Source: Eukaryota sp. TZLM1-RC
Lineage: Eukaryota > Protista > Metamonada: BaSk clade
NCBI GenBank assembly: GCA_040285825.1
Contig: JAUPSS010000009.1
Location: forward strand, 806,001 to 870,000
Length of the DNA stretch: 64,000 nt
Direction: 5' to 3'
A program made the translations under genes and the position numbers. Shown here piece by piece: positions 3,729-57,150 of the stretch. The notes beneath the pieces are model-generated. The model was not told where the DNA came from and did not search any database. It saw only the letters and a program-made list of their open reading frames with translations. The stretch's first letter is position 1; each line of letters starts with the position of its first letter.

Positions 3729-4759
3729 ATGAGTACTAACGTCATCAAAGGTGCTTTAGAGACAGTCTTCGGTCAAGCGCTTAGTACATCTTCAGATCCT
3801 GATGTAGTGGCTCCGATCACGTTCTTTGACTTACACCATCTTTCTCTTCAGTGTGGCGCAGTAGGAGATCGTAGCCCTGATCTCATCACGGATGCCGTAG
3901 GACGTGGGCCTCCTGCCTCTAGCAACAGGCATTCGTCCCGGATCTCCGAACCCGATGGTCTGAAAGTTAAAACTTTGACAGGAAAAATCATTCCAATTGA
4001 TTTGCAAGAACTAGACACCGTTGAATCACTTAAGTACAAAATTCAAGAACGGGAAGGTATCCCCCCAGATCAACAACGGCTGATTTTTGCTGGAAGGCAG
4101 CTCCAAGAGGACCAACTTCTATCATCTTGTGGTGTACAGAATAATTCAACAATTCACCTAGTTCTACGTCTCCGTGGTGGCAATGCTGAAGTAAGACCAT
4201 ATGGTTTTGATATGAACATTGTGGACTCTGCCTTTAGCTTTGACTTTACAAACTTAAAAGACGATGGTACCGTTTTCTATCGTGGAAAACACAGATACTA
4301 TCGCCCATATGGATGGAACAGAATTGCATTGAAAGTGAAAGACAAGTTCAATGATGGTAACGAATGGCTAGGTACCCAGGGACTACGAACAAAGTCCAAC
4401 GCCAATGAATGGCCAGTTTCGTACCATGGTACCGCACACAACAGCGCCAACACTATCGCAAATGATGGTTTCAATCTCTCAAAGGGGAGAAGATTTCTCT
4501 TTGGTCATGGTATACCCTCATCATTTTGTTGCTCATCCAAGGTGTTTACACAACTCCCGACGTTGAAGTAGCAGCACTGTACGCACCAACATATGAAGCT
4601 GATGGTCGACGCTTTAAGGTTGTATTGCAAAATAGAGTCAACCCAGCTTCTGACAGACTGATCATTATTTCCAAAAAGAAAACCAAAGTGGGTGAATATT
4701 GGGTGTCTAAAGATGATGTTGATGTACGTCCATATGGCTTGCTCATCAAGGAGGTATAG
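3729..4759 (+). CDS. Ubiquitin domain fused to a NEURL4-like (PARP/DTX-fold, H-Y-E) ADP-ribosyltransferase; 332 aa, one intron at 4510-4541
   Basis: Ub domain KVKTLTGK...[13 protein letters not shown]...HLVLRLRGG, then [24 protein letters not shown]|[27 protein letters not shown] 32-nt GT..AG intron restores the frame. Confidence 0.85.
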
Positions 4760-5039
4760 TTCGTTGTAGTTTTTAACTAGAATTGTAAATAAATGATATA
4801 ACACAACAAACCATGTTTTGCTGGTTTTGCAATTATCATCTTGGGTTGTCAGAGTCTCCAGTGATAAGCTGTTTTGATGCTAAGGAGGCAGGACTTGAAC
4901 ATATAGAGCTTTATTTGTCTGAATAATATTTCGTTTGTTGTTGAAAAAAATTGATTTGGTGGAAAATGAATGGTTGTTCGCCATCTAGTATTTCTATTAA
5001 TGAACTTTTATTAAATCTACACACTTGGCAAAATCAACT

Positions 5040-5398
5040 CATATCTAATGGGGCGAAATTCATGGAACCAAAATTTCCTCTACAAAATCTTGATCTGCTT
5101 GTTGTCTAGCTAAAGCTTCTCTCATTCGATTGAAAAACCGAGGCAATCTATATGTAATGGCAAACTGAATCCAAGAACGCCATGAAAAGATATCAAATCC
5201 TTTAGTTGTTTTTTCTTGAACCATTTTGTGGAAATCATTCAAAACAGTTCCTGCTTCTAGTGAGAGTCTTCCGTTTGTCGAAAATGGGAAAGCAATAAAA
5301 GCAAGTGTTCTATTTCTATCAGTATTAGCTTCTTCGATATCTTTATCATATTTTCTATGTTTTTCTTAGCTTTAAATTCAAGAGCACTTACAGGATTG
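5040..5398 (-). mobile_element. 3' fragment of RLE non-LTR retrotransposon family A
   Basis: FDIFSWRSWIQFAI...LARQQADQDFVEEILV matches the C-terminus of the 17271-18458 ORF. Confidence 0.9.
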
Positions 5399-6089
5399 GG
5401 TATGCTGTTGTTCAAAGAAATGTATGTAAGAATAAGGCACCAGGTTCATCACTATTTGTCACCATTGTGACTCGACCAACTGAGTTATCAGCTGCTAAGG
5501 ATGCTTTTGTATCTAAAATCAGTATTAAATATTGAAGTTGACCATTTACCAAAAGCGACAAGATGTACTGTTTCGAGTGGTTTGTAACTCACCTGGGCAT
5601 GTAATCATGTATTCGGACCAAACATGGTGCAAAGAAGAGATATAAAGGCTTCATTAATACGAAAAATTCAGAACCCTTTCATTTCCTAAAAACAAAAACT
5701 GACAGAAATACTGTCACCAGATAAAATCGGTTCTGAAGACCGAGAAAATAGAAGATGATTGGATTTAATAACACTAAACGCATTGGTTGACTATGATTCC
5801 TTCGATGTTGCAAATTCAACTTTTGTTCAGAGAAGAAAATTAAATCATATAGATGTACTCACATTCAAAGCAAAAGAGAAAGACAAAAAATTTGAAAAAT
5901 TTGAAAAATACAAAGGTTGACTGATGTTGAAGAAACCGATACCAATAAAAATTGACTAACCTAAAATCTAAAAATCTAACCTATTGGTTCTGATTATATG
6001 AAGTGCTTTAGTTCAATAAAAATTGTTTTTTCACAATAGCTGTGCTTCACAAGAATTAATCATGCCATTAAGACCAAGTTTGTTCTTTT

Positions 6090-6309
6090 TTTAGAACTCT
6101 TAGGTCACAAGGTAGTATAATGAAGTATACAGATATATCGTATATATTCTACTTTTATATATACTTGTATACTTGCTGTACGTACTTGTTCAACAAGGTA
6201 TGTATATTATATATACGTAATAATATAATATAAATATAATATATAGGTGTGTATAATTGGGTGCGCACCGACTGAACAATTTGTCGCACCATTGCACCGC
6301 ACAACACTG
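6090..6309. mobile_element. Right end of a hAT-type MITE (same family as 43633-44179)
   Basis: Shares TTAGAACTCT.AGGTCACAAGGT and GGTGCGCACCGACTGA with 43950-44179. Ends in ...GCACAACACTG (reverse complement CAGTGTT). Confidence 0.7.
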
Positions 6310-6341
6310 AATTTATCAAAAATTCATCGCATTCATATTCA

Positions 6342-8346
6342 ATGTCAAATCGTCGAGCTCCAACCTGTGACGAGACGTTTTCCCATTTTGCTGTCTGTCG
6401 TCCTCCTTGGAAACACCGTCGTCAAGATTTCAGCTCACCATCTATATGTGAGTCATACAAATGCTGTCTCTCTTCTCTACACATCCTCACAGACCTCCGT
6501 AACACCCCTCATCTCCGTGACTACACCCTTCGATTCAAGGGCGAAGAGTTTCCTGTTCATCGTGCTCTTTTGGTACTCTACTCAAAGTACTATCACAAGC
6601 TCTTCACTCTCAATTGGGTAGATTCAGATGATTCTTCAAGCGATTACGACCATCTTCCCGTCTCTTAGTCCTCCCTCAAAATCTTCCTCGATTACTTTTA
6701 TGGAGAAAGTATCGAATTCACTCCTGAAACGTTTTATCATTTCAGGTACCTCTCATCCTTTTTCGAGGTAGATTCACTCAAGGAGGCTTGCGATCATGTC
6801 ATATCTGTTCACTTTCAATCCCCTGACTGGCTCCTTCCTGCTGTGGTCAATGCTGATGTTAATGAAGACCAAAAACTCTTAATAAAGATAGGTTCCTACA
6901 TTAACTCAACAATTTTGGAACCACTCTCTCTTTCTTTTGCCTCTCTCTTGCTTGGTAGAAGAGCAGCAAGCTGAATCTTTTTGGTTGGTGAGGTCTGTGG
7001 TTAGGTCTTGGAAGAAGAACAATTTGTCTGATTGTCAAGTGGAAAAGTTGCTTGATATGATTGACTCTGAGGAATTGAAGATTGAAGAACTTTATGAAGA
7101 TGTTTTTCTGTCTTTTTATCAGCAAAGTCAATTTAATGAATTTTGTTTGAATTTTCTATTAAACATTTCAAAAATAATTCACAAATTCCACCTAAATGGT
7201 TCTTTTGGGTTTTGAAAATGGCTAATGAAAAACAAATTCATTTAGAATTTTTATCATCTTTTTTAATTAATCAAAACCGTGAAGAAAATGTTTTGGAATT
7301 AAGTTTTGAATCTTTTAAAGTATTTCAGCAATTAAAAAGCAAAAAAATAGGCATTTGGTTATTAAATTGTTTGAAGTTGAATTGTTTTGATTGGAATATT
7401 GATCAATTTAGTGAATTTTTAATTGGTTTTGATTTAAACTTATTTAATCCAAATGAAATTCAAGAATTGTTCATTAAACCATTTAATTCAATTGAAAAGT
7501 TTGTTGTGGTTATAAGTAAGTTTAATAATGAAATTGTTGTCCCTTTATTAACTGAAAAATTTGAAAATACTATCAAAGAAAAATGTGAGCATTTTTCAAA
7601 AAAGCAATCAAATTTAAGTCAGGAATTAGCTGAAACAGTTCAAATGAATAGTCAATTAACCACCCAAATTCAAGAATTAGATCACAAACTGCAGTTTAAA
7701 AACCAAATAATTCAATCAAATTTATCATTAATTAAGGTTTGTGTGTGGGCTGATTCAAGTTTGCATAATGACATTACCGAAAAAATTCACAACAGCATTA
7801 TGCAAAATTAGCCTAATCTAAACGTACGAATTACCTCATCTAATGAACCAAAATTAAACAACATTAATAATTATGATGTTGTTTTGTATAATACTTATAA
7901 TTTAACCATTCAAGCCACATTACTCCAACAAATAGTAGAAGCTGGTAAAGGCTTAGTTTTGTTTAGTTGCTTTGGAAATCGTATTAAGGGTGATTTTAAA
8001 TATGGAGCATTCAAGGGTTTGAGTGGTTGGAAATCATTTGGCTCTTACATTGAACTTAAATTGAACCAACTCTAACCAGAGTGATTTAATCATGAAATCA
8101 GTAAACTCTTTTTCTTGTCAGTATTGTGCAAAATACACTTACATCAACCCTGAATTTGAATCAGTTGCTACCTTGAAAAATGGAGATCCTTTGGTGTTGA
8201 AGAGTAAATATAACAAAAGTAGAGTGGTGGATTTTGCATCAGTTGGTCATAGTACTGATAGAAGTAGTTCGGGGTGGAAAAGCTCCACAGATGGTCATTT
8301 ATTACTGGCAAATTCAATAGTTTGGGTTTCTGGAAGGGATGACTAA
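6342..8346 (+). pseudogene. BTB/POZ - coiled coil - class I GATase-like domain protein, disrupted
   Basis: DYTLRFKGEEFPVHRALLVLYSKYYHKLF and IFLDYFYG form the BTB. In-frame TAGs at 6666-6668 and 7809-7811; frameshifts near 6940, 7143 and 8075. The C-terminal NNYDVVL...VEAGKGLVLF...NGDPLV...LLLANSIVWV resembles the repeats in 11148-14327. Confidence 0.75.
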
Positions 8347-8654
8347 TAAACTTGACATTTTTCTTTAGGTTTAATTTGAATTACTTCGTTTTTCCACATT
8401 TTTTGCATTGGTATATTCCAGCACATGATTAATCAAGCTTATTTATTGAAACTGCTGTTACTTCACTATTGAGTAGAACGTCGAAATCATGGCTAGGTGT
8501 CACTAGAACTGCTGGTGTGGATCGCTTGTATTTATTTGGAAGATCTATTTGGAAAAGAAAATTTAATTCTATCAAAAAGTGCAAGAAATATTCTTTATTG
8601 ATTGGAGAAAAAAATTTAATTTATTATTTGAATCAATAATGCCAGACAATTTTT

Positions 8655-9215
8655 TTATTTAACTTCCACACTTAACAAAATAAACTCATAACTAATGGGA
8701 CGAAATTCATTGAACCAAGATTTCCTCTTCAAAATCTTGATCTGCTTGTTGTCTAGCTAAAGCTTCTCTTATTCGATTGAAAAACCGAAGTATTCTATCA
8801 ATAATTGTTAATTGAATCCGAGAGTGCCAAAATAAGATATCAAATCTTCTCATTATATTTTTTGGAAATCATTTAAAGAGGTTCCAGCTTCTACTGATAG
8901 TCTTTCGTTTATAGAACATAGGAAAGCAATAAAAACAAGTTGTCTGTTTCTATCACCATTAGCTTCTTCAACATCTTTGTCATATTTTCTATGTATTTCT
9001 TTAGCTTTAAGTTCCAGAAAACCTACAAGATTCAATTGTCTTCTTTGAACCAAAGTGTCATTTGCAACATTACAGGAGACAAAGTCAACAACAGCTTCAG
9101 CGTTCTGAATCCAATCACAGTATACATCACCTCTATCATCAGAACCAAAATTATTCAATGACAGTGTTTCTTTCAGCAGAGGCTCTTTGATACACGAAAT
9201 TCTTGCAGTTTGATA
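8655..9215 (-). mobile_element. 3' fragment of RLE non-LTR retrotransposon family A
   Basis: QTARISCIKEPLLKETLSLNNFGSDDRGDVYCDW is nearly identical to the 17271 ORF; the 3' UTR is present. Confidence 0.9.
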
Positions 9216-9699
9216 AAGTGAATTCATTTAATCAATAATTTATCATTTTTGTATCATTTTTGTTCAATGTGTCTTGAACTGTTTGTGTTGCTACTGGGTT
9301 TCAGTTTCTAACGTATACTGACGAATTGCTGGTTGAAGATCTAAACAGCACTCCTTTCCTCGGATCCAATTTTGTTTTGCTTTTAAGAGACTCAATAGAT
9401 ATCTGCATAAGACAGAGGTTGTAAAGAAGTTAATACAATATAATGATGTGTTTATTGTTTATTGTTTTTTTTGGTAAACTTTTTTTTCAAGCCACACATT
9501 GTTGTGTTTGGAACATGTTTTCAAAAGTGCTTTTTTGGGATATAGGTTTAGTAAAGTGCGTTTTAGGGAGAAAATTCTATCATTTATTTACAATTCTAGT
9601 TCCTTTGCTTTTGAATTTGGCTGATGAAGCTGACAAAAATTTTCTGGGTGATAGCCGCGGTGATGTGTTAGTTCCCGGTCTTGATTGATCAATGATCAT

Positions 9700-10750
9700 T
9701 ATTGACGTCAGACCTACTGATTTATCAAACAGCTCAATTAAAAAAAAGGCACCATCTTATAATTGACCTCTATGTAGAGTTGAAAAAGCGAAAATTATCA
9801 AATATGTTGAAAAAAATAAATAATCTGAATTCCAACTCACATACTCAATACTTTCTTTGTCCTTTTGCCTTTTCTGTATTTGAAACCTTGGGTGAAACTG
9901 CGTTATCTTTTATAAACGATTTTTAAGGTTTAAGAAAAAAAAACAAAAAATGGTTTAAAAACAGTATTAAGAGAATTGAAAACATTTTATAGCAATCACG
10001 AACTCTACATGTTACATTTAAAGGTTTTTAAAGGTGATGTTGATTTACGTCCATATAGCTTCCTCATCCTGGAAGTACAGATCGTCATTGCTTTTTAACA
10101 TAAGATAGACAATAATGTTTTTGTAGAACAATTATGTTTTGCATTATTGTAATTATTTCGTCATGTCCGAATCATATCGAGTATATTCCTTTTCAGAACC
10201 TTTGCTATCAAAAGTAATTCTCCATGACCCCAATACTGATAGTACGCGCTGCAACAGAACTTCTGTGGCTCTGACAAGAGGTTGGTTGTTCCCGGCTTAA
10301 ATGGTAGTATTACCATTTCAGATGCCATGTCCATAGACCCTTGTAATTCCTCTAACGAACATTTCATTAACTCAGATGTAAATAATCCTCTTTTTGCTGG
10401 CGAAAAAAATACAAAATTGCTAATTACAGAAGTATGCGAAAGCTATTTCTTTTGTCAATGAAAATTTTCATGTCCAATTGAATTTATATCCCTTTGTTAT
10501 TTCCTTGCTGAAATCTTTAGGTAAAGCTGCTATGGCTTTCCTCGAGGATTTTGATGTAGTTGTAAAAGAAAGAACTGGAAGAATTTTCAATGGTGTTCAC
10601 TGGCAAAACAGGATTGTATTTTCTATTTTTAAGGGAATTGTGAAAAAAATTTGTGATTCACTCTCTTCTTTTGGGAAATTTTCTGAATCTTCAGTTCTCA
10701 ATTGTTTTGATGTAGGGGAGGCAGATTTTGAGGATGTTGAGCTTTAGTTG
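9700..10750 (+). mobile_element. Decayed 3' RLE-domain fragments of a second non-LTR family (9700-9940 and 10478-10747)
   Basis: YFLCPFAFSVFETLGETALSFINDF and LYPFVIS...LEDF.VVVKERTGRIFN..WQNRIVFSIFK parallel the RLE C-terminus of family A. Confidence 0.6.
10030..10150 (+). pseudogene. 3'-end remnant of a ubiquitin-ART paralog
   Basis: GATGTTGATTTACGTCCATATAGCTTCCTCATC (DVDLRPYSFLI) matches 4714-4747. Confidence 0.6.
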
Positions 10751-11147
10751 TGTATTTGATGATCTTTTTTCCTTATTCGATAAATACAGAATTCTTTCGT
10801 TTGCTTACTATTCCTGGTTTTGAACGTAATTGATTTAAATTATTGTGTGACTAAACCCGTTATTTGTAACCAGACAAGGTTGTTGTTTTCGTTCTAAGAG
10901 CTTTCAGATTCGATATCCAATAGAACTGTGAAATTCATCCAAAGTTTCAACATTTCTGAATGAAGAAGAAATTCAACAAAATTTGTGAGAAAAAGACAGT
11001 TTTTGTATCCAAAGTGTTTGGTGACATTTAAGAACAACTTTAGAAGATTCATCAAATTTGTTGTATTTCAACTTAATAATGGTAAGAATTCAAAGATGAA
11101 AAAGTCAATAATAAAAACAAAATTAATTGAAATCAAAACAATATAAA

Positions 11148-14100
11148 CTAAACATAATGATAGAAATTGTGAATGATCATCTCTTGCAGTAAAAGATCAA
11201 CTTTCTCCCAGTGAGCAAATCTTATGGGACAGTAAATCAATCTAGACTGGCCATATTTCTTTTCCACCAAGAAAGGAACTTTATCACCATTCACAGCAAG
11301 TACATTAACTTTGGCATCATTGACTTGAACCGCATACTGTCTACTGGATACATCACCTTTATGACGTCTAGGGAAGGCACGAGTAAGATAATGTGGGTTG
11401 CCAAGCTTATAAGTAGGCTGAGCTGATGTTACCCATTTGTACAGAAAATCAGCCTTCATCAAATACTGATCCAAATGCAAAACAAAATGAGAAGAAACAT
11501 CACCTCCAGTAAGCAAAATCTTGGTAGAATTAAAAACCAAAGTGTTGTTTAGATTTCGGAAATACTGATGTGGAAGGGATGAATCAACAAAATTCAAGAA
11601 AATCGTGTTATAGTCAACCACATACTCTGTAACGTAGTTGCTTATAATCAAATCAAATAAAGGAACTCCTCCCAAATGAAAAGGTAACCCTCCTAAAGCA
11701 TGTTGAACTGCAGTAATAGCAGGTTCAAGAGCATTTGGAAAAGTGCCATCGTTATCCACAACAAGATGAACGAGATGTTGACGACGTTCACGTACACAAT
11801 CATAACTTTCTAGTGATAAAAAGTTGGTAATAACCTGGGAAAGATATGACTGAAAGACATTGTCATTAGAATCAACAGGAACCAGTGTTGAGAGTGCTAA
11901 AACTGAATCTCCCCATTGGCTATTTGACTTGCACATTAAGCAAGGGTAACCATTCTGAGAGCGTTGATAGACAACCACATCTTCACCAGTTGGAACGAAT
12001 GGATGGTATACATGTTGGGAAAAAGTAGTATTTGGAGGTAAATTGTTATTAAACTTGCCTTGATCAAAGTTTTGAACACCGTTTGATCGAAAAGGCCACA
12101 ATGCATCAAAATCATTCAACCGAATAAAATTCTTACTGAACAGTTCTCTTGATTTAAGTCTCAATGAACCCCCCAATATAAATACTCGCTTGTTATTGAC
12201 CAAAAGACTTTGTAATGCATCAACTGAGTAATCTGCAAAGTCCATACCATTAAAAGCAATTATATAAGTATTATATTCTAAAGAAGTGATCGAAGCAACA
12301 GAGTTGGTTCTAATGAAATCATATTCGACACCAATATTGTTTAAAATAAAGTGTAGATTATCGAAATTGTAATCATCACTAATGAGTGACAAAAGCACCT
12401 GCTTTCTCTTCCAATGAGTATCTCTGGGTGAAATACTAAGAGAATTAAATAGTAATTGTTGGAAATAACCCCTATCATCGCCAGCATAACAACTAATATC
12501 AACATCAACAATTACAAAAACTCCTTTACCAATGGTTTTACTTGCGGCTATAGCATCGCCAAGACCATTACTACGGCGAATGGAGATTCTTGCATCAAGG
12601 TCATCAATACCAAGATGGTTAACCCAACATGAATCAGCAAATTTGAAAGCTGGAGCAAGATTCCTCACTAAGGGGTCACTTGAATCAGTAATTTTAGCAT
12701 CAATTACAGTTTGGGTTGGTGTTTCGTGGTAAATACTTCTTGTGGAAATTAAATTCCAGGACAGACCTTGTTGAATTAAAAACTTATATTCATCTTTTGA
12801 CCCATACCATACAACTCTCATTCCTGATGAAACCCAATGGCGAACAACTTGGAATTGATAGGGTTTAAGAGCAGAATTATGGTTGAGAATGATTACTGTT
12901 GAGTAAGGAGCGACATCAACCAGCTGGAACTGAACAGAATTTACCAAATCATAATTAAAACCGCCATTTTTTAACATTTCTTCAGTAGAATTAAACACTT
13001 CAAAAGAATTGAGTGTGGAAGCACGAATGACTAAAATCTCAGAAGGTACAAACTTGGCTTCATCATAAGTTAAAGCAAAACAATTCTTCACAATTTGGCT
13101 CAGAGTTTTCCTATCTGAAAAACTCAGTTTCTTTGTGATTTTAAATGATGAAAATGTAACAAAACCTTTTCCTAACTGTTTTGCACCCAAAGCTGGCCAA
13201 CCCTTGGTATTACGAAAAACAGTAGTGAATTTGGCATCAGTAACTTCAACTGAATACTTGGTAAGATCAACTTCATTAAATTCAATAATGTTTGGTAGTT
13301 TTCGGGCTAGAGGATGTTTTGGTTTGACATTGTTCAAAATTTGGGAGGATGATCTCCATTTAAAACTATCATTTTTAGCACGTATGAGAGCTGTCATATT
13401 TAAAAATTTCGACATGTCAAGTGATCCACCAAATAAAGACAACTTAATCCCTTTATCAACAGCATTGAACAAAGACTTCCAGGAATCTTCGTTGAACAGC
13501 TTCTCTTCTGCATAGACATACAGAACAACATGCTTGTATTCTTCAAGAGCTACTGAACTGAATGATGATGTATAAACGACATCATAGGAGCTATGAGTGT
13601 GGTAGTAATCATTGAACAGAGATTCAAATAAAAGAGATGAAGGTAACAATTCATTCACCATTGAAAATAACAATAAATTGTCTTTTCTTGGTTTTCTTGC
13701 TTCAGTTTGAGTGGTCCTGATAGCATTGGTCAATAATCGACCTAGAAAAGCAATAGAATCGTCATCAACATACCATTCAGCGCGAGGACTAAGACCAATG
13801 AATGATACCACTCCACGATGGAAGGACTGGGTGAGGACAACAGGAACACCGTATGCATCACGGAAACAAACCCTGCTGTTGGAGCTGACAGGAAGTGCAA
13901 AGGTTGGAAGTGATTCATTTCCAATGGAAGATCTTGGCGACATTGAATCGACGAGGGGGCAACCGTGGTCAAAAATGGTGAGAGTGTTGCCAGGGGTTCT
14001 CCATTGAGGATGTTGGAGCAGGACGACGTCAGAGAGGGTCGATGTAAATGATTCAGAGGTAGATCCACCAAAAAGAATAAGATTACCACCTTCAAGAGCA

Positions 14101-14327
14101 TAGGTTTTGAGGAAATTAGCATCTTTGGAATCGAGATCAGCAGAATCAAAGGCTACAATGACTTGATCGAACTTAGAGAGGTCAACATGGGAATAGTCAT
14201 CAGCTTCGATGACAACCACAGATTCTGGTAAAACTGACAAAAGATGGGATGAGTCATCAATTCCAGTAGTTAAGAGCAAGGTTTTGGCATCAACAGATCC
14301 CAACACCAAAAATAGCACTAGAAGCAT
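11148..14327 (-). CDS. Secreted protein of about 1060 aa with five tandem class I glutamine-amidotransferase-like (alpha/beta) repeats
   Basis: Intact ORF with signal peptide MLLVLFLVLGSVDA (ATG 14327, alternative 14348). Repeats of about 210 aa with DLS.(F/Y)..V...GG.L.LFGGS...W...HPL...R...G.P....K..GKG. Confidence 0.7.
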   Translation of the reverse strand: MLLVLFLVLGSVDAKTLLLTTGIDDSSHLLSVLPESVVVIEADDYSHVDLSKFDQVIVAFDSADLDSKDANFLKTYALEGGNLILFGGSTSESFTSTLSDVVLLQHPQWRTPGNTLTIFDHGCPLVDSMSPRSSIGNESLPTFALPVSSNSRVCFRDAYGVPVVLTQSFHRGVVSFIGLSPRAEWYVDDDSIAFLGRLLTNAIRTTQTEARKPRKDNLLLFSMVNELLPSSLLFESLFNDYYHTHSSYDVVYTSSFSSVALEEYKHVVLYVYAEEKLFNEDSWKSLFNAVDKGIKLSLFGGSLDMSKFLNMTALIRAKNDSFKWRSSSQILNNVKPKHPLARKLPNIIEFNEVDLTKYSVEVTDAKFTTVFRNTKGWPALGAKQLGKGFVTFSSFKITKKLSFSDRKTLSQIVKNCFALTYDEAKFVPSEILVIRASTLNSFEVFNSTEEMLKNGGFNYDLVNSVQFQLVDVAPYSTVIILNHNSALKPYQFQVVRHWVSSGMRVVWYGSKDEYKFLIQQGLSWNLISTRSIYHETPTQTVIDAKITDSSDPLVRNLAPAFKFADSCWVNHLGIDDLDARISIRRSNGLGDAIAASKTIGKGVFVIVDVDISCYAGDDRGYFQQLLFNSLSISPRDTHWKRKQVLLSLISDDYNFDNLHFILNNIGVEYDFIRTNSVASITSLEYNTYIIAFNGMDFADYSVDALQSLLVNNKRVFILGGSLRLKSRELFSKNFIRLNDFDALWPFRSNGVQNFDQGKFNNNLPPNTTFSQHVYHPFVPTGEDVVVYQRSQNGYPCLMCKSNSQWGDSVLALSTLVPVDSNDNVFQSYLSQVITNFLSLESYDCVRERRQHLVHLVVDNDGTFPNALEPAITAVQHALGGLPFHLGGVPLFDLIISNYVTEYVVDYNTIFLNFVDSSLPHQYFRNLNNTLVFNSTKILLTGGDVSSHFVLHLDQYLMKADFLYKWVTSAQPTYKLGNPHYLTRAFPRRHKGDVSSRQYAVQVNDAKVNVLAVNGDKVPFLVEKKYGQSRLIYCPIRFAHWEKVDLLLQEMIIHNFYHYV

Positions 14328-14544
14328 TATGGTAGGGCGATCATTCATTGAGTCGAGATGATGTGAAATTCTTGAGTCTTTTTTGATAGAATTGGATTGA
14401 CACAATAAATTATCAAAGATCAAAAAACCCCTTTTCACCGTTAGGTAATTTTATCAAGTTAGTAAAGAAATCAAGAATCATATGTTTGTTTCTATTTTTT
14501 CCCATGTTTTTCACACATTTTGGCATTTGAGAAATACTAGATCA

Positions 14545-15240
14545 TTTATTATCAATAGAAAAATGTATTTGTTCACCACAGCTCACATTGCGTTATGCTC
14601 TGAATTGTTCGAAATTGATAACTTATTGTTCTTCATTAAATTTGTTGGAGACACGGTTTCTAATATGGCACGAACTGCGAGAATCTCGTGTATTAAATGA
14701 GCCTCTGGTAAAGGAACCGTTGTCATTCAATAATTTCGGTTCCAATGACACAACTGATGTATACTGTGATTGGATTGAGAACGCTGAAGCTGTTGTTGAC
14801 TTTGTCTCCTGTAATATTGCAATGGCGCTTTGGTTCAAAGAAGCATAACTAATCCTGTAAATGCTCTTGAATTTAAAGCTAAGAAAAACATAGGAAATAT
14901 GAGAAAGATATCGAAGAAGCTAATACTGATAGAAATAGAACACTTGCTTTTATTGCTTTCCCATTTGCTACAACCGGAAGACTTTCACTAGAAGCAGGAA
15001 CTGTTTTGAATGATTTCCACAAAATGGTTCAAGAAAAAACAATTAAAGGATTTGATATCTTTTCATGGCGTTCTTGGATTCTATTTGCCATTACATTTAG
15101 ATTGCCTCGTTTTTTCAATCGAATTAGAGAAGCCTAAACTAGACTGCAAGCAGATCAATATTTTGTAGAGGAAATTTTGGTTCCATGAATTTCGTCCGAT
15201 TAATTGTGAGTTGATTTTGTCAAGTGTGTAGATTTAATAA
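14545..15240 (+). mobile_element. 3' part of RLE non-LTR retrotransposon family A, decayed
   Basis: Zn knuckle (LRYALNCSKLITY), DVYCDW and 3' UTR. The inner boundary of the inverted duplication (14850) lies inside it. Confidence 0.9.
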
Positions 15241-15488
15241 AAGTTCATTAATAGAAATACTAGATGGCGAACAACCATTCATTTTCCACCAAATCAATTG
15301 TTTTCAACAACAAACGAAATAGTATTTAGACAAATAAAGCTCTATATCTTCAAGCCCTGCCTCCTTAACATCAGAACAGCTTATGACTGGAAACTCTGAC
15401 AACCCAAGATGATAATTGTAAAACCAGCTAAACATGGTTTGCTGTGTTATATCATTTATTTACAATTCTAGTTAAAAACCACAACGAA

Positions 15489-16519
15489 CTATACCTCCTT
15501 GATGAGCAAGCCATATGGACGTACATCAACATCATCTTTAGACACCCAATATTCACCCACATTGGTTTTCTTTTTGGAAATAATGATCAGTCTGTCAGAA
15601 GCTGGGTTGACTCTATTTTGCAATACAACCTTAAAGCGTCGACCATCAGCTTCATAAGTTGGTGCGTACAGTGCTGCAACTTCAACGTCGGGAGTTGTGT
15701 AAACACCTGGAATGAGCAACAAAATGATGAGGGCATACCATGACCAAAGAGAAATCTTCTCCCCTTTGAGAGATTAAAACCATCATTTGCGATGCTGTTA
15801 GCACTGTTTTGTGCGGTACCATGGTACGAAACTGGCCATTCATTGGCGTTGGACTTTGTTCGTAGTCCTTGGGTACCCAGCCATTCGTTACCATCATTGA
15901 ACTTGTCTTTCACTTTCAATGCAATTCTGTTCCATCCATATGGGCGATAGTATCTGTGTTTTCCACGATAGAAAACAGTTCCATCGTCTCTTAAGTTTGT
16001 AAAGTCAAAGCTAAAGGCAGAGTCCACAATGTTCATATCAAAACCATATGGTCTTACTTCAGCATTGCCACCACGGAGACGTAGAACTAGGTGAATTGTT
16101 GAATTATTCTGTACACCACAAGATGATAGAAGTTGGTCCTCTTGGAGCTGCCTTCCAGCAAAAATCAGCCGTTGTTGATCTGGGGGGATACCTTCCCGTT
16201 CTTGAATTTTGTACTTAAGTGATTCAACGGTGTCTAGTTCTTGCAAATCAATTGGAATGATTTTTCCTGTCAAAGTTTTAACTTTCAGACCATCGGGTTC
16301 GGAGATCCGGGACGAATGCCTGTTGCTAGAGGCAGGAGGCCCACGTCCTACGGCATCCGTGATGAGATCAGGGCTACGATCTCCTACTGCGCCACACTGA
16401 AGAGAAAGATGGTGTAAGTCAAAGAACGTGATCGGAGCCACTACATCAGGATCTGAAGATGTACTAAGCGCTTGACCGAAGACTGTCTCTAAAGCACCTT
16501 TGATGACGTTAGTACTCAT
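15489..16519 (-). CDS. Ubiquitin-NEURL4-like ART fusion, second intact copy; intron at 15707-15738
   Basis: Near-identical to 3729-4759; 32-nt GTATG...CAG intron. Confidence 0.85.
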
Positions 16520-16590
16520 TCTTGAATGTTAAAGATACAATAAAGTATTGTCGATTGATCACAAATTGTTTTTGATTATATTTTGGTCAT

Positions 16591-20378: not shown

Positions 20379-22162
20379 ATGTCCTCAGCCTATTTTCCCA
20401 ACTATGAAAGGAAACAGTCCAGTTGCTGCTTGAAATGTTTCTTGTGTGGATCCATTCTTGCATCGATATTGCTGTTATGTTTCGTTGTTTTCATGGTCTA
20501 TACTCAAACTCCAATAATGGCTTCGAGTGTTGGCATCCAAGAAGAAGCCAAATGGAAGCATCAATGCCACCCCAGCAAAAACGACAGTCTACATAAACTG
20601 TCCAAAAGCGACTTTTTCTGGCCTAATATGAGAAAGGACCTCATAAACCACATCAAAAGATGCCCAACTTGTCAAAAAACGGCACCAGTTAAAAGAACAA
20701 AAAGTTGGACTGGGCTTGTTGAAATGAATCGATTGAGTGTGGTCAATACTCAAACCAGATGGTTCAATTTGAGTACGATGTATCATTTGGTGATAAAACC
20801 GTTACAGCAACTGTGGCCTTTGACAGTGAAAAGAGAACTTACTATCGAACTGTGAACAATGTAAAGCTCTGGTACAGTGAAGAGGAAAATGCTCTCCTGA
20901 AGGGTGATAGTTCAGTCTCAGACTATTGTCTTCGCCTTGAAACGTCTTTTCTCTTTCTTATAGTAATCATAGAAAGATCAAGGCTGATGATCCACTCTTG
21001 GATTTCAATAGGCAGTGTCGAGACATCGCAAGCCCACCTCACCAGCAAGCTAGCGTTCGTTATGAGCATCGTTTTGGTGATGGTGATTCTGTTCAACTGA
21101 TGCTTATTGCGTTCGATCATGCTAATGGTCACTACTTTCTCAAGGCAACACATCAAAGTAATTTCTTTACAATCTGGTTTGACCCAGAAGACCTTTATGA
21201 AGTGTACCAGGATAATTTTGGTCCTTGTCACAAGCACGCTCTTGATCCAAATGAGGATGAATTTATTTCAATGTACACTACGTTCGATTTAATGATTCCT
21301 CCTTCCAACACTGTGCCAGCTGGTGTAACAAACTACAACGATATGAATTGCTTTCTTTACAAGGACAGTGGAATGATTGGTCTAGAGTCTAGAGTCCTTA
21401 GCTTTGAATCTGAATGGTATGTTTGTAATCAGTTTGTCCATGAGTGGCGTGTGCTAATAGACGATGGAAGTTGGGAGTCTCGTACCTACACTGATCACAA
21501 GTATGTTGATCTTTGTCTCTAATTCCAGACAGCTAGCCACCAATGACCCCATCTTTGATTTTGACAAAAGCTGTACTCATCTCGTCGAAGCAATACATCC
21601 CATAGCGATTCAAGATTTCGAGTATGTGACCAAGGACATCAAGGGAGTGCAGGCATATAATCTTGAAGATGACCTGTTTTATTATGAAACTGGTGGATCT
21701 AAAGTATGGTATGAGGGTTTCTTTGATGTTGCGTTTCTACAAGATGAATCGATGCGTGACCATGAATGTGTGCAAGTCACTGATGATAAGCTTTTAAACA
21801 CCATGAAGCTCAAACTAGCCCCCTCTGATCCCAGATATGATGATATTGTCACCGTCAAAGTAGTCAATGATCAAAAATGGACTATGGTTGAAGTAGGTGA
21901 CCAAGGATTTGCTTATGATGTTCAATGGTGTTTGGCGGATCAATTCAATCATGAGCTCTTTGTTAATTGGGAAAAAGACCCTGCTGATACGATTCGTTTC
22001 TCAAACCATCAGTATGTTTTGCATGGTTCCTTGCGTTACCCCAGGTCAATAACCAGAGATAATGATGTGTTCAACCACAAGAAAGCTTGTCGTTTAATGG
22101 TGGATCAAGACACATTATCTGAGCAAGTTCTTTTAGAGAAAATGCGGTTAGTTGGAGGTTGA
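20379..22162 (+). pseudogene. Second copy of the 3-repeat ependymin-like gene, with the integrase insert and an internal deletion
   Basis: Inverted copy of 123-2143 that lacks the equivalent of about 1329-1565 and retains the full C-terminus. Confidence 0.65.
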
Positions 22163-51230: not shown

Positions 51231-52139
51231 TAAAGCTTTTTTCACAATTGTTATGTCGCCCATTGAAACCACATCTTCATGGATCAATCATTATTTATGA
51301 AGGTACATTGCTTGAATTCTCACATACATTTTTTCTCAATAACAAAAGAATCAACATCTTGGTCCAAAACTGCCGAGTAGCGGATATTTTTTTTAAAATA
51401 GATCATCATTGTTTTTTCATAACATTGAAGAGAATTAAATCTGAAAGGATAGCTTGACAAATTTTAGTCTTAACTTCATTAAACGTACCATTAAAGAGAT
51501 GGTGCACAATTAAAGCATCAATATTGAGTTTGATTTCTAAGAGTTAGACATAGCAGAGTAGTTGTTTTTTACATCGATTTCCACTTTGTAGGTTGATTTC
51601 CACTTCGATTTATGGTCAGACTGTTGACTATCTTCAAATTCAATTTAATTACTGTTTCCGATCTATTTTCATCAAAAACGAACCTTTTTTATTTTATTGA
51701 AATGAAAAAATGCATTTGATTTAATAGTCAAAGTATTTATTAATCCTCCCATGACAAACAATAGAGACAGGCCGTAATATTGTAATGGAGAAAAGTTGGA
51801 TTGTGAAGGAGCTGACGATGGACAGAAATGGCCACATAGGAAGAGAGTGGTGGGATTTAGGACGAGTCCAACAGTTGCTTTAAGAGAACCAACTGCAGGT
51901 ATAAGGTAATAATAAATGACAGAAGAGTAGAAAAATCGGTAGAAGGGGTACAAGGGGAGTTCTGAAGCTCGGAAAAGAAGGTAAGTGAGGGAAATAAAAA
52001 GCTAGTTTATGAAGTGAGGGGAAAGTGTAGGAATAGAGAAAAACCTCCCAAAACCAAGTTGAGGGTTACAAACCTCCCAAAACAGGCAACCAGAGGTCGA
52101 AAATGGGGTGACAAGTGTAAAATTTGGCTGTTTATTCTC

Positions 52140-54142
52140 ACCACATGTCAGACACCCACTCTGTCACGTGTATTCACTGAATCTTGTGCACTTAACTCGC
52201 TGCTGACCCCTTCAGCGGTGCAACAAATTCGGACTGACCTTCCTTTGGTCACCGAGATTTGTCATGAAGCTTCTTTATTGCTTCAATCTTTTCTTCTAAA
52301 TTTTCCGTTGGCTTCTAGAGCTTTAGTGGAACAGGATGTATGGTGTCTTTTTATGACCTTCATCACCACTGGTTCTTTTCCAAAGCCATCCACTTACAAG
52401 GGACAAAGCCAATTACTCCTTATTTTTTACAGTGAATTTTTTCCTGAATGTCCACAGGACAGGTCTCTTGTTTCTTCATGGGAAAATACTTTAGTACCTT
52501 ATAGATATTCATTCAATCTTTTCCTCAATGATTGGCTGCAATCTCAGAAAGGTAATTTTATCAATAGAAAAGGGCTTTCTCCTTACCTTGCTTGTCGGGC
52601 TCGTCAATTGGCGTCTAACGTTAAGACAAGTTTACCTAAAATTTGTCAATCCTGGACAAAAAAATTCATTCGTGCTCATTGTAGAGCTCTAGATAAAACG
52701 AATGTCTGTGCCAATTTTCTTTTCTCTCTTTTACCAGATAAACTCTTAGTCCAAATCGAAGAAGTAGTTGTTGATTCTGTTATCGAACACTACATCAATT
52801 TCAATCTGAATAATTCAAAAGAAAGATTCTTTTTATTAAATGCATGTAAATTTATCTTGAATCTCCTTCAAAGATTTCATGTCACTGCTTCTCTACTGTT
52901 TTCACAAGATAAAATCACCTTTTCATCAAAGGAAATTGGTGAACTTTTTCTCTTTAACCTTAAAAATTCACAATACTTACTCACTTTCTTTTCTCATATG
53001 CTTTGCTTCAAAAAATTTAGAAAAATACCTTTAGCTTCTCATAAAGGTTCTAAATTTCATGAGGTACCTTCACAAATTTTCCATTCTGTGAAAAAATTCC
53101 CACTTATTGAAAGATCATCTTCCAAAACAAAGTTCATCAAAAATACACGTCTGAAACGAAAATTCAAACAATGTTTTTACCAAGAATTTTATATCAAAAG
53201 AAAAAGTTTGAAAAATAGTTTTGAACAAATTTTATGGAAAACTAATGGTAATGAACTGGTTTTCCCATTTCAAAGTAAAAACTATAACTCAGAAAGCACA
53301 GATGAGCTGGATGAACCACCGAAAAAGAAACGAAGATTGAAAAAAGAAATGAAAAGTGACCCTGATGCCAACAAAACCAGAGAAACATAGTTGAAGGGCA
53401 CTAAAAAATGCCCCGTCGAAGAAGACGTAGACATCCAGTCGAAATTTTACCTGAAAGGCCCCTTATTGGCGTTGATCTGGGCCAATCTAGATTATGTGGT
53501 TACTTCTTAAATGTTAATCAATGTGGAGTTATCCCTTGTCCAACTGGTAGAAGATATATGACAGAACCTTCACCCAGTAAACAGTCTCTTAACCAATATT
53601 CCGTTTAAAATTTCAACCAATATTTGAACCAAATTGGAATTTGGTCAGGAGGAAAGTGGATTTTGAAAGTAATCGCCAGAAATGGAAAATAATTAAATTT
53701 GATAACTGCAGACGAAAAGAGAGACGGTTCCGAAAGAGTCTCAACAAATTTCAAAGGCTGGCTGGACATCCTGATAAACTCTACCTTGCTGTGGGTTCTG
53801 CTAATTTTCCTTTTCATTACCGGAAAGACAATCGATATGGATCAGCAAGGGCTTTTAGAAAATGGTAGTGTTATCAAAAGGACGTGAAGCACTTGTCAAC
53901 CAGTGAATTTAATACATGCAAACTGTCAAGTTGTTGCATGGCCGAGAATATTCAAACAGGCTCATGGCAGATGCGTAATTGTACTGAAATGTCAAATAGT
54001 ATATGACAGAGATATTTCCGCTGCAAAAAATGTTCAAATTAAGAAGAAAACGGAATTGTGGCCGGAAAGACACAACCTGCCCAGATGCTCTCTTGAGGAG
54101 ATGAATGGGGAACCTGAGCATACAGAAACAAAAACTTTTTAA
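52140..54142 (+). pseudogene. Fanzor1 (eukaryotic TnpB/Cas12-like RuvC nuclease), disrupted
   Basis: RuvC-I IGVDLG (D 53474), LAVGSANF, RuvC-II SEFNTCK (E 53905), Zn finger SSCC...NCTE/CQ, RuvC-III DRDISAAKN (D 54011). N-terminal ESCALNSLL...VTEICHEASLLL and WKTNG resemble Fanzor1 WED/REC. NLS-like PPKKKRR. Several stops and frameshifts. Confidence 0.85.
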
Positions 54143-54199
54143 AAACTGATATTTTATTTTGAGTTATTTATTTTTTCAATTTTTTTGAAAATCTTTTGA

Positions 54200-54335
54200 G
54201 ACCGATCTACAAATATCTTAGTGGCATTTGGTAAAACCACTTAGATACATCAAGTCGCGAGGCTTTGTTCTGTGAAAGCAGTAGGTGTATTTAAGTGAGG
54301 TAGCCCATTGATGAAGATCATGATTGTCTTTGTCA
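54200..54335 (+). ncRNA. Candidate Fanzor omegaRNA scaffold
   Basis: A 13-bp stem (54238-54250 with 54285-54297) encloses AAGTC-GCGA-GGCTT and CTGT-GAAA-GCAG GNRA hairpins. Outer pairings 54218-54224/54305-54311 and GATCT/AGATC. Starts about 60 nt after the Fanzor stop. Confidence 0.6.
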
Positions 54336-54474
54336 AATGACGCTACACATCTCTTACAGCCTGTGAGTAGACATTGAGAAAGTCGAAAACAGGAATGAAT
54401 TTCACAGGGGAATGTATGATAAGTGAAATTCTCTATAATCCTCCCATAATCTCTCTCCAGTCAATGTACAATAG

Positions 54475-56279
54475 ATGTCCTTTCTTCTAGGCAAACATGG
54501 CACTAGATCTTCTCGACAACCTATCAAGTCTCATCCTCCCGTTTTTGGTGTTTCCCTTTCAGATCTTCCTCCTTCTGAACTCCCCATTCCTTCTGTCGTC
54601 CGTACTTGTGTAAGCTTCATTGAAACAAACTGTACGTGTAAAGTAATTCTTTAACCAAAGGTCTCAAAGTACAAGGCATCTTTCGTGTTCCCGGCGTTGT
54701 TTCCCAGATCCTCGAACTCAAGTCTCGCTTTGATTCAGGCGAAAATGTTGATTTCTCATCAACCACCAACCCAAACGACGTCTGTGGAGTCCTCAAGCTA
54801 TATTTCCGTGAATTAGGTGAACCACTCATCCCATACGGCTTATTTTCTCAAGTTTTCTCTTCCGAAACGCTCACAAATCTGGAAACTTTTGAAGACTTCT
54901 TACCACGTCTCAAAAAACTAATCAACCTTCTACCTGACAACAACCGCATCCTTCTCCACTATCTATGCCAATTCCTTGCTCTAGTTGCGTCTTACCACCA
55001 TTATAACAAGATGACTGTGGAGAATATTTCACTTGTTTTTGTACCCAATATCATTAGGTCGTCTAGTAGTGATAAGAAAGATTTGTACAACCCAAAAGAT
55101 ATGAAACCTTTTGTGACGTGTTTTAAACTGTTAATTCAGCATTTTGAGGAAATTTTCAGTACTGGTGACGAAGAGATCAAGGAAAATTTAGATGAAATTA
55201 GTGAAAATTTGGAAATGTCACCACCACTTAGCTCACCCTCGCCGCCAATCAAATCACCTTTACAATCAGACGAAGTTGATTATCTATCTCAGAAAGTCAT
55301 CAATCAATTGCTATTTGGTGATGTCGATTTGATTGATTTAGGATTAGTCAATCAAAGACAATCGAATGTTGAGTTTTCCACGCTCTGTAACAGTATCAAT
55401 GAAGATTTTCGTGTAAAGTCACACAGTCTAGCTCAAAAATGGAGGAAGGAGGTCAAAAACGAGGCTAAAAAGATTACCAACACCAGGAATTATTCTCGTG
55501 ATTACGTGGCAGTTTCCTTTCGCGATTTATCAAATTTTGATATCCAATCATTTTCTGCGACTTTATTTCAACTAAAATCAGAAATTCACGATTTTGAACA
55601 CAAATTTCAAATGAACAATAATGGGAAAAAACCACATGGAAGAGAGCGAGACCCGATAAGGCCGAAATTAGAAGAGTATTTTAATTTGCATCGAAAATTA
55701 AAAAACATATGTGCTATTAAAATTCAATCCTTAATAAGGGCATTTTTGAAAAAGAAAAACTTCCAGAATTCTGGAATGTCTGCTCAATTATCCCCTCTGG
55801 AGGTGCTAAACTATCGGCTTGCTGCTATCAGAATTGAGGAAAAGCGCCCATCTGATATGAATTTAATGAATCTAGAACAGAAAAAACAAGAAAAAACCGC
55901 AATTAAACGAGAATTACGAAATTTTGACTTAAATTTTGAACAAAAATACGGTCGTGAGCCTTCCCGTGAAGACAAAGAAATAATGAGACCTTTGTACCAT
56001 CGCTATAAATCAATTGGAAAAATGATTGATGACGAATCTAAATTATCAACAGTTCAAGAAAGTGCTGAACTTTTTGATACAATTTTATTACCTCAAATAA
56101 GTTTGCCAGCCTACTCAGAACCAGTTGGGAGGTGTATGTCAAATTCAGAGTATCATTCGCTAGTACAGACAAGAGCTCAATTAAGAGATGACTTGAGAAG
56201 ACTTTCTAGCCAAGTCGTTGCGGTTCATAGGAAGTATATAGAAGTAGAAAAACGAATGAGTGCGATCGAAAGGATGTAG
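54475..56279 (+). CDS. RhoGAP - IQ - FAM13-like C-terminal repeat protein; intron at 54632-54660
   Basis: VFGVSL...IPSVV..C...GIFRVPG arginine finger, LKLYFRELGEPL, NKMTVENISLVFVPNI; IQSLIRAFL; two L..F...F...GR.P...D....Y..Y units. The true start lies upstream of the ORF-track start. Confidence 0.85.
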
Positions 56280-56664
56280 GAGTCAATATTTAATAAATTA
56301 TTTAAAGTTTGTTTTCTTTTTGTTGCAATAAAGTAGTTCTTCTATGGGTTTCTGAGCTAGAATTCAATGATGATTAAACTTGCATATCAACTGATTTCCA
56401 AGAACATGATTAACACGTTGTAAAAATGAGTATTTTAAAAAATTGAAGACGTTCGGCTTCTCTATTGGACATTAAATAATCTGATCATTCACTGACATAA
56501 CTTGGGTTGGTTGACCAAATTCCGACTCAAGCAATCACAACATTTAAACACGCTCAGCTTCTACCTGAAAGATCTCCCATTGATCGGTCGACATAGCACG
56601 GGAGTTCAACACTTCTAAAATCCATTATTTTCAGAAACAAGCAAAATAGATTGACTAAATTTCA

Positions 56665-57150
56665 ATGCATCGCGGAGGATTTCCTGGACAACGGCCTCAT
56701 AATAGAAGATTTCCCGGACCACATCGTGGGGGTTATCCTGGACAGCAACCACCTTGGCAACCACCCAATAATGGTGGATTTCCTGCAGCACGACCTGGTG
56801 GATTGCCTGGAGCACGACCTGGTGGATTTCCCGGACAACAACCACCTTGGCAACCACCCAATAATGGTGGATTTCCTGGACCACATCCTGGGGGTTATCC
56901 TGGACAGCAGCCAGCTTGGCAACCACCCAATAATGGTGGATTTCCTGGACCACATCCTGGGGGTTATCCTGGACAGCAGCCAGCTTGGCAACCACCCAAT
57001 AATGGTGGAATTCCTGGACCACATCCTGGGGGTTATCCTGGACAGCAGCCAGCTTGGCAACCACCCAATAATGGTGGATTTCCTGGACCACATCCTGGGG
57101 GTTATCCTGGACAGCAGGGTGGATTTCCTGGACAGCATCCCCGATATTAG
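56665..57150 (+). CDS. Gly/Pro/Gln-rich low-complexity repeat protein, 161 aa
   Basis: ATG to TAG; 69-nt (23-aa) units [23 protein letters not shown]. Confidence 0.7.

Follow-up and report, generated by a model that had tools for sequence, protein, structure and literature searches.

A decayed copy of a DNA transposon with a Fanzor1-type gene and a candidate omegaRNA scaffold in the metamonad Skoliomonas litria

To our knowledge, Fanzors are the only known RNA-guided DNA nucleases of eukaryotes, and their development as compact genome editors is under way. Among the described systems, Spizellomyces punctatus Fanzor1 (SpuFz1; PDB accession numbers 8GKH and 9CEU to 9CEZ; also GtFz1 and PpFz1) is the best match, by profile and by structure, to the protein family presented in this study, and the match extends from the WED/REC region to the C-terminus. 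In Fanzors, the catalytic site is rearranged; i.e., Gly or Pro takes the place of Glu at the canonical RuvC-II position, and the loss is compensated by a Glu approximately 45 residues downstream (PMC10530073), which in the structures published in Cell in 2024 sits on the loop from the fifth strand to the TNB domain (PMC11423790). The DNA analyzed here, referred to as the window, is a stretch of 64,000 nucleotides (nt) of Eukaryota sp. TZLM1-RC, the type strain of Skoliomonas litria (Metamonada), and comprises positions 806,001 to 870,000 of contig JAUPSS010000009.1. S. litria TZLM1-RC is a free-living, haloalkaliphilic, anaerobic metamonad with the congeners GEM-RC and TZLM3-RCL (PMC11603281). 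Window positions are used throughout, and all features of the element in the window lie on the plus strand. A first-pass annotation, made from the letters alone, had placed a dead Fanzor1 locus with an adjacent candidate omegaRNA at 52140-54335. Our analysis indicates that the segment 52002-54431 is very probably an old, dead copy of a non-autonomous Skoliomonas DNA transposon in which a Fanzor1-type gene (approximately 650 amino acids) is followed by the gene for an omegaRNA scaffold.

The skoliomonad element also resembles that of the SfAV Fanzor1 of insect ascoviruses (Yoon et al., 10.1101/2023.08.09.552727). Both are simple elements that carry Fanzor1 alone, with a protein of approximately 600 to 650 residues, and both have short terminal inverted repeats, AT-rich target sites, and a guide RNA (a candidate in the present case) in which the last stem-loop contains the inverted repeat. 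The scaffold, however, is approximately 120 nt long in SfAV and approximately 240 nt in the skoliomonad element, which in addition has approximately 1.2 kb of extra sequence on the left that includes, in TZLM1, apparently captured host gene fragments. TnpB of IS200/IS605 (ISDra2) and Cas12f have in common with the family the RuvC plus TNB core and a guide RNA from the 3' end of the element (again a candidate here), whereas TnpB has approximately 400 residues and the canonical RuvC-II Glu, and its elements, which are without inverted repeats and target duplication, are moved by the TnpA Y1 transposase.

The extent of the window copy was defined by blastn against L002:5851-8225, a copy from the same assembly, with which it shares 90.6% identity over 52002-54139 and 95.1% identity over 54188-54431. 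The first-pass annotation had the locus right, but the repeat unit is larger than the span it gave, and the RNA region runs approximately 100 nt past the end of that span. A conserved leader (52002-52144), nearly identical to that of L001 and L002 in alignment A1, leads up to the start codon at 52145 and is followed by the Fanzor1 pseudogene (52145-54104). The gene is 91.1% identical to the intact open reading frame (ORF) L002:6001-7956, which encodes the 651-residue protein P0022, in a pairwise alignment, and on the basis of this alignment, the ORF list, and tblastn of P0022, it is divided into six frame segments. In the tblastn comparison, residues 4 to 424 correspond to 52152-53414 in frame 3, residues 417 to 649 are traced through frame 2, and residues 496 to 614 correspond to 53632-53988 in frame 1, so that the fragments are colinear parts of one gene of approximately 651 codons. 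What had been described as four broken frames is therefore indeed one broken gene, but with six segments separated by five frameshifts (-2 at 52162, -1 at 53403, +2 at 53631, +1 at 53987, and +1 at 54076, relative to the L002 ORF) and with three premature stops (TAG at 53388-53390, TAA at 53606-53608, and TAG at 53866-53868). The stops were located after the window copy had been placed in the reading frame of the reference, with gaps filled by N, and one in-frame +3 indel was observed at 53418. The longest open piece (52014-53390, 458 amino acids; NCBI entry P0001) covers the N-terminal, WED/REC-like part, and the ORFs after 53390 are short and carry the motifs IGVDLG, SEFNTCK, and DRDISAAKN. 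With eight disabling lesions in the ORF, a damaged RNA region, and the left 1.25 kb gone, this copy is functionally dead. Between the end of the ORF and the RNA region lies an AT-rich spacer of 48 nt (54140-54187; alignments A2 and A5), which is present in the window copy and partly in L004a and which the young copies lack. Since these two copies, which are 85 to 91% identical to the young ones, have the spacer, they belong to an older subfamily.

As the first-pass annotation had anticipated, intact copies of the gene exist elsewhere. The P0022 ORF is uninterrupted and intron-free, and GEM-RC contains intact ORFs of 648 residues (P0035; L003:6001-7947) and 646 residues (P0039; L007:10001-11941). 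Seven TZLM1 copies, all with the common repeat unit, were sampled (the window copy, L001, L002, L004a, L004b, L005, and L006). Five of the six copies other than L002 have frameshifting indels, stops, or both, and the sole defect of L001 is an in-frame deletion of 426 nt. A single 90% cluster, that of P0007, contains 82 TZLM1-RC gene models, and because most of these are fragments, the cluster points to dozens of mostly decayed copies in this genome. Between TZLM1 and GEM, ORF identity is 59% at the protein level and 62% at the DNA level, with saturated synonymous divergence (dS) and a nonsynonymous divergence (dN) of 0.35, and the GEM paralogue pair has a dN/dS ratio of 0.28. This ratio, together with the pattern of divergence between TZLM1 and GEM, argues that the Fanzor protein was kept under purifying selection during the spread of the family.

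The intact paralogue P0022 was used for the full-length searches and for fold prediction, and the pieces of the window copy were searched separately and never joined. The sole Pfam match of the separate pieces was a subthreshold match of the last piece to the Cas12f1-like TNB domain (PF07282; E = 0.034, 14.7 bits), and no match to the solved structures in the PDB was found with them. Because the window pieces alone gave nearly nothing, Fanzor identity was established through the paralogues. The intact paralogues match PF07282 with 27.6 to 28.8 bits, above the gathering cutoff of 26.3. When a family profile of 14 sequences (A4) was searched against all PDB sequences, the best match was SpuFz1 (8GKH) with an E value of 3.3e-9 over profile positions 252 to 604 (approximately 350 positions); the next matches were Cas12m and TranC, ISDra2 TnpB matched in the TNB region only (E = 8.5e-4), and Fanzor2 was not among the matches listed. 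An AlphaFold2 model of P0022 was built on the family alignment. In Foldseek, the top seven matches of this model were all Fanzor1 chains (SpuFz, GtFz, and PpFz) with E values of 3e-7 to 8e-6, and Fanzor2 followed at 1.3e-2. VIA-align gave Z-scores of 12.9 to 15.0 for Fanzor1, with 467 to 506 aligned residues spanning residues 7 to 651, compared with 11.6 (286 residues) for TnpB and 11.3 (296 residues) for Fanzor2. The family is assigned to Fanzor1 because Fanzor1 ranks first both in the profile search and with two structure aligners, approximately 200 more residues being aligned; in sequence and, at moderate model confidence, in fold, the family lies nearer to Fanzor1 than to either TnpB or Fanzor2, and its REC is expanded. 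With 10 to 12% identity to the solved Fanzor1 proteins, it is a new and very divergent Fanzor1 lineage.

The motifs named in the first-pass annotation (IGVDLG, SEFNTCK, a zinc finger, DRDISAAKN, and a basic patch) are all found where it had placed them. RuvC-I IGVDLG is located at 53465-53482, and its catalytic Asp (codon 53474-53476) corresponds to D444, which is invariant in A4 and aligns to VIDP of SpuFz1. At the canonical RuvC-II position, AVGSANF (53788-53808) carries Gly for the usual Glu (codon 53794-53796); this residue, G550, is invariant and aligns to VVMGDW of SpuFz1. The Glu of SEFNTCK (53902-53922; codon 53905-53907) corresponds to the nearly invariant E587, which is 37 residues after G550 and aligns to DEYKTS of SpuFz1. 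SEFNTCK had been read as RuvC-II, and its Glu is indeed conserved, but it is the C-terminally shifted Glu of Fanzors rather than the residue at the canonical position. The TNB zinc ribbon (53932-53992) consists of a Cys-Cys doublet (53932-53937) and a CxxC pair (53980-53982 and 53990-53992), which in the window copy is split by a +1 frameshift. RuvC-III DRDISAAKN (54005-54031; catalytic Asp codon 54011-54013) lies inside the Pfam TNB match, and its residues R621, D622, and N628 are invariant. In terms of family motifs, RDxSAxxN aligns to RDMLSTCN and (S/D)E(F/Y)xTS aligns to DEYKTS of SpuFz1, and AxGxxxF holds the invariant Gly. The family thus has the Fanzor-type rearranged catalytic site, and the window copy still has all three catalytic codons (RuvC-I Asp, shifted RuvC-II Glu, and RuvC-III Asp). 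Upstream of RuvC-I, the basic patch PPKKKRRLKK (53316-53345), which is conserved in the GEM-RC and TZLM3-RCL proteins, lies in a linker that is predicted to be disordered (low AlphaFold2 confidence over residues 380 to 431) and is a candidate nuclear localization signal; a second, Arg-rich patch was observed at 53408-53437.

The skoliomonad proteins therefore have in common with SpuFz1 the RuvC-I Asp, the Gly at the canonical RuvC-II position, a D/S-E-F/Y-x-T-S motif that precedes the zinc ribbon and contains the shifted Glu, the RD...N motif of RuvC-III, a P-E-x-F-x-R C-terminal tail, and a 3' guide RNA region (a candidate here) that reaches the transposon end. They differ from SpuFz1, apart from the low identity given above and the metamonad host, in that the two Cys of the first zinc pair are adjacent (Cys-Cys) and not spaced as CxxC, that RuvC-I is DLG in TZLM1 and GEM, and that the patch resembling a nuclear localization signal is located inside the protein, in the linker preceding RuvC.

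The noncoding block downstream of the gene is more conserved than the gene itself. A core of 97 nt after the stop codon (window 54270-54366 against L003:8085-8181) is 90% identical between species in blastn, compared with 68 to 76% for the alignable parts of the coding region. Alignment A6 contains ten copies, seven from TZLM1 (237 to 243 nt) and three from GEM (255 to 267 nt), and covers the block from the shared TTTGAGACC box to the right end; over this length, interspecies identity is 80 to 82%, compared with 62% for the ORF. RNAalifold of A6 gave 75 pairs in eight helices, in which a closing stem encircles three long stems and is followed by two hairpins, namely, a CCUGU/ACAGG hairpin, with a GAAA loop in GEM and a 24-nt loop in TZLM1, and a terminal hairpin of 11 bp. 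Five pairs have compensatory changes on both sides between the species, and no indel lies outside a loop. The pair that closes the loop of the terminal hairpin is C:G in TZLM1 and U:A in GEM. In the named structure, 98.4% of the cells are paired, compared with 35 to 44% when the partners are slid by one to three columns, and the covariation score was above those of all 500 shuffles. The sense strand of L005 folds with -78.9 kcal/mol (z = -5.45) and its antisense strand with -62.6 kcal/mol (z = -4.17); for L003, the values are -84.8 kcal/mol (z = -6.63) and -53.1 kcal/mol (z = -2.87), respectively. The structure also contains many invariant G-U pairs, which favor the sense RNA.

In the window, the candidate omegaRNA scaffold occupies 54195-54431, where the closing stem, the three enclosed stems, the CCUGU/ACAGG hairpin (54360-54393), and the terminal hairpin (54395-54431) are recognizable in decayed form. 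Of the 75 consensus pairs, six are disrupted, a long stem has disappeared, and the z-score is -2.83. The 3' arm of the terminal hairpin is the right inverted repeat, of which the first base is mutated here and the final ACAGTA is missing. Neither the window region nor a good copy matched Rfam. The layout of the block, with a scaffold after the ORF and a last stem-loop derived from the terminal repeat, matches that of mapped Fanzor1 RNAs, and the omegaRNA candidate of the first-pass annotation gains a structured, conserved counterpart with compensatory changes.

The ends of the elements were defined by comparison of the copies. All copies except the window copy and L002 have a common right terminus, ...GAAATTCACAG, followed by TA. 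The left ends vary among the seven TZLM1 copies: relative to the window copy, which begins at 52002, that of L004a is 14 nt further in, that of L001 is 31 nt further out, that of L006 is approximately 450 nt further out, and those of L002, L004b, and L005 are approximately 1.1 to 1.25 kb further out. The window copy lacks approximately 1.25 kb on the left, together with the left inverted repeat, and the terminal 6 nt on the right. The longest copies start with C(T/A)GTGGTTGAATTT, an inverted but imperfect match to the right end, and are preceded by TA. A GEM copy (L003:4792-8236) has a perfect 13-bp terminal inverted repeat, TACTGTGAATTTC, and is flanked by TA on the left and on the right. Full elements are approximately 3.4 kb (GEM) to 3.8 kb (TZLM1) long, and five copies have TA flanks and C(T/A)GTG termini. 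L004b has TT at both flanks, as would be expected if the two flanking bases are a 2-bp target duplication and not part of the repeat itself. The target-adjacent motifs of characterized Fanzor1 proteins are AT-rich (CATA, TTAA, and ATN), and the left flanks of the full copies, which are AT-rich and end in TA, are compatible with such motifs, five sites being too few for a logo. A Helitron- or LINE-like origin, as variable left and constant right ends might suggest, was dropped, given that the longest copies have a left inverted repeat. A TA target duplication, CAGTG-like termini, and a DDE/D transposase are hallmarks of Tc1/mariner elements; the TA flanks and CWGTG termini of the skoliomonad elements recall them, although no transposase was found in any sampled locus.

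The left parts of the TZLM1 and GEM elements could not be aligned by blastn or tblastx. In the long TZLM1 elements, the left 1.1 to 1.25 kb (L005:8183-9566; also L002, L004b, and L006) contains two host-type gene fragments, which are the C-terminal end of a TCP-1/cpn60 chaperonin (L005:8334-8624, plus strand; E = 1.6e-9) and a complete MJ1316 RNA cyclic-end recognition domain (L005:9277-9522, minus strand; E = 7e-11). This arrangement looks like gene-fragment capture by a transposon, and the left part of the GEM element is unrelated. In L002 (JAUPSS010000002.1), an insertion of approximately 2.1 kb (8226-10311), flanked by an 11-nt direct repeat (AAGTGAAATTC), lies inside the terminal hairpin, and the true right end (ACAGTA) follows the insertion at 10321-10326; a 287-residue gene model inside the insertion had no Pfam match. 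A 1007-residue gene on the minus strand (L005:2219-5245) has a PolB-type 3'-5' exonuclease domain (E = 5.9e-7) and a C-terminal stretch that resembles the Fanzor RuvC-II region (ILILMGD...), and TNB was not detected in it by Pfam. In TZLM3-RCL, the XPG/FEN1-type nuclease model P0073 (L008:7923-9947) immediately precedes a Fanzor gene; it terminates in a fragment resembling the Fanzor N-terminus and is probably a chimeric gene call over an older Fanzor remnant.

An intact member of the family would probably act as follows. The protein, with D444, the shifted E587, and D622 of RuvC, the zinc ribbon, and the basic patch for nuclear import, would bind a structured RNA of approximately 240 nt transcribed through the right end of the element into the flanking DNA. 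The last hairpin of the scaffold is built from the right terminal inverted repeat, and the read-through flank would act as the guide. The complex would then cut matching, motif-adjacent DNA, e.g., empty insertion sites, and this cutting would favor retention or copying of the element through repair.

Several observations weigh against this interpretation. L002, the sole sampled TZLM1 copy with an intact ORF, has the 2.1-kb insertion in its terminal hairpin, and none of the seven sampled TZLM1 copies has both the ORF and the RNA region intact. A partner transposase was not found in the window flanks, as the first-pass annotation had already remarked, or in nine related loci. The AlphaFold2 model of P0022 is mediocre (mean predicted local distance difference test score, 60.6; predicted TM-score, 0.44), and TM-scores to Fanzor1 are approximately 0.4. 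The published Fanzor1 pattern, DPG x(120,280) E x6 [CH]xxC ... C ... RDxxxxxN (Yoon et al., 10.1101/2023.08.09.552727), is failed in its strict form by all ten skoliomonad proteins tested, in which an adjacent Cys-Cys takes the place of [CH]xxC and RuvC-I is DLG (TZLM1 and GEM) or DPN (TZLM3 subfamilies) in place of DPG; a relaxed pattern fits all of them, and the weakly matching metagenomic relatives P0068 and P0069 fit the strict one. We read the Cys-Cys zinc pair and DLG/DPN as lineage variants within Fanzor1, not as grounds for exclusion. For the RNA, the shuffle control for pairs changed on both sides was not significant (185/500), as expected with only two lineages, and the covariation from these two lineages represents at most five events; an nhmmer profile of the RNA block found nothing in the TZLM3-RCL locus L008, so that a third covariation lineage is not available. 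Transcription of the block, the ends of the RNA, and its use as a guide are predictions from the DNA sequence.

It is improbable that the 3' block is not a guide RNA but a DNA-level cis element, such as subterminal transposase-binding sites, or the 3' untranslated region or terminator of the mRNA. The block does include the right inverted repeat, and the fold of its antisense strand is likewise more stable than those of shuffled sequences (z = -4.17). However, the left end shares just a 13-nt repeat with it and has no cross-species conservation, unlike transposase-binding subterminal regions. Furthermore, the invariant G-U pairs and the changes from GC to GU and from AU to GU are neutral only in a sense RNA, the sense strand folds 16 to 32 kcal/mol better than the antisense strand, and indels are found in loops. 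The position of the block and its terminal stem-loop next to the would-be guide also match published Fanzor1 RNAs (10.1101/2023.08.09.552727).

That the family is instead Fanzor2 or a relative of IS607-type TnpB would account for the fact that Pfam recognizes only the TNB domain, for DLG or DPN in RuvC-I of most members and the failure of the strict pattern, and for the Z-scores of approximately 11 that TnpB, Cas12f, and Fanzor2 still reach. Fanzor1 nevertheless comes out best in the profile search and in both structure aligners with some 200 additional aligned residues, the protein of approximately 650 residues has a large helical N-terminal half, and the element, bounded by inverted repeats with TA flanks, lacks a serine recombinase, which makes such an origin very unlikely. 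The least probable explanation is a host or domesticated gene or an integrated piece of a giant virus, although NCBI annotates the open 399-residue piece as a gene (P0001) and most language-model neighbors of the protein are PF07282-containing proteins of Nucleocytoviricota. This explanation is at odds with the dozens of copies, which occupy different sites, have common ends, and in many cases are decayed, with the ordinary host genes that flank the window copy, and with a base composition like that of the rest of the window. A Fanzor1 transposon with an omegaRNA scaffold gene is therefore the interpretation that we prefer.

Several of the transposon copies are found close to the starts of host genes. 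The right end lies 42 to 121 nt upstream of the annotated start codon of a host gene in the same sense in six of the ten copies with a defined right end (L002, L004a, L005, L006, L007, and L009). In the window, a candidate start codon (ATG at 54497) is 65 nt after the element and opens the apparent first exon of the downstream gene. The left ends of L001 and L003 are 16 and 10 nt, respectively, from the start of a divergent gene, and none of the copies lies between convergent genes. An orientation bias toward downstream genes was considered and set aside, as five copies are in divergent regions and uninformative, and the tandem ones (5 of 6 in the same sense) give no significant result. It is doubtful that the elements are targeted to the 5' ends of host genes, and the proximity may be due simply to such sites being tolerated in a compact genome. 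If targeting did occur, the read-through guide would be host 5'-leader or promoter sequence, and the family would be a promoter-proximal RNA-guided homing element or would be partly co-opted for gene regulation.

The window is AT-rich throughout (32 to 40% GC). The genes flanking the Fanzor copy encode a HAT-repeat splicing factor, a membrane transporter, and a Sec7 protein, and no second Fanzor copy was found within the 64 kb by tblastn of P0022. Other repeats in the window are unrelated to the element. They comprise an inverted repeat at 1-22284 with arms of 1150 nt (179-1328 with 20958-22107, 99% identity), a second one at 3708-16540 with arms of 1699 nt (3708-5406 with 14842-16540, 97% identity), and several dispersed families of 150 to 300 nt at 5 to 9, 15 to 18, 41 to 46, and 50 kb. 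In addition, a tandem array of approximately seven copies of a 69-nt unit (56634-57140, 61 to 92% identity) was observed just 3' of an ORF of 422 residues (55011-56279).

In protein databases, the 458-residue window piece matches its own NCBI entry (hypothetical protein P9112_012852; P0001, 399 amino acids), many paralogues in TZLM1-RC, and related proteins of Eukaryota sp. GEM-RC1. When 1.8 billion cluster representatives were scanned exhaustively with HMMER, only 32 proteins reached E ≤ 0.001; apart from two or three metagenomic proteins, essentially all of them belong to the three Skoliomonas genomes. A profile search of a set of 5.8 billion proteins, in which the word filter was saturated, returned the family itself alone. 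Because just 32 matches were obtained and nearly all are from Skoliomonas, the lineage is very isolated in sequence space.

No earlier report of a Fanzor from Metamonada was found in a literature search, which for Trichomonas yielded just an unrelated review. The result for the window itself is modest, as it concerns one dead copy among dozens. As far as that search showed, however, the family is the first Fanzor1 lineage reported for Metamonada. Natural intact proteins exist (P0022, P0035, and P0039), so that no reconstruction is needed, and the family offers defined element ends and a well-delimited candidate RNA scaffold with a structure backed by interspecies comparison. With their Cys-Cys zinc finger and the DLG and DPN variants of RuvC-I, proteins of this kind would be missed by pattern-based surveys.

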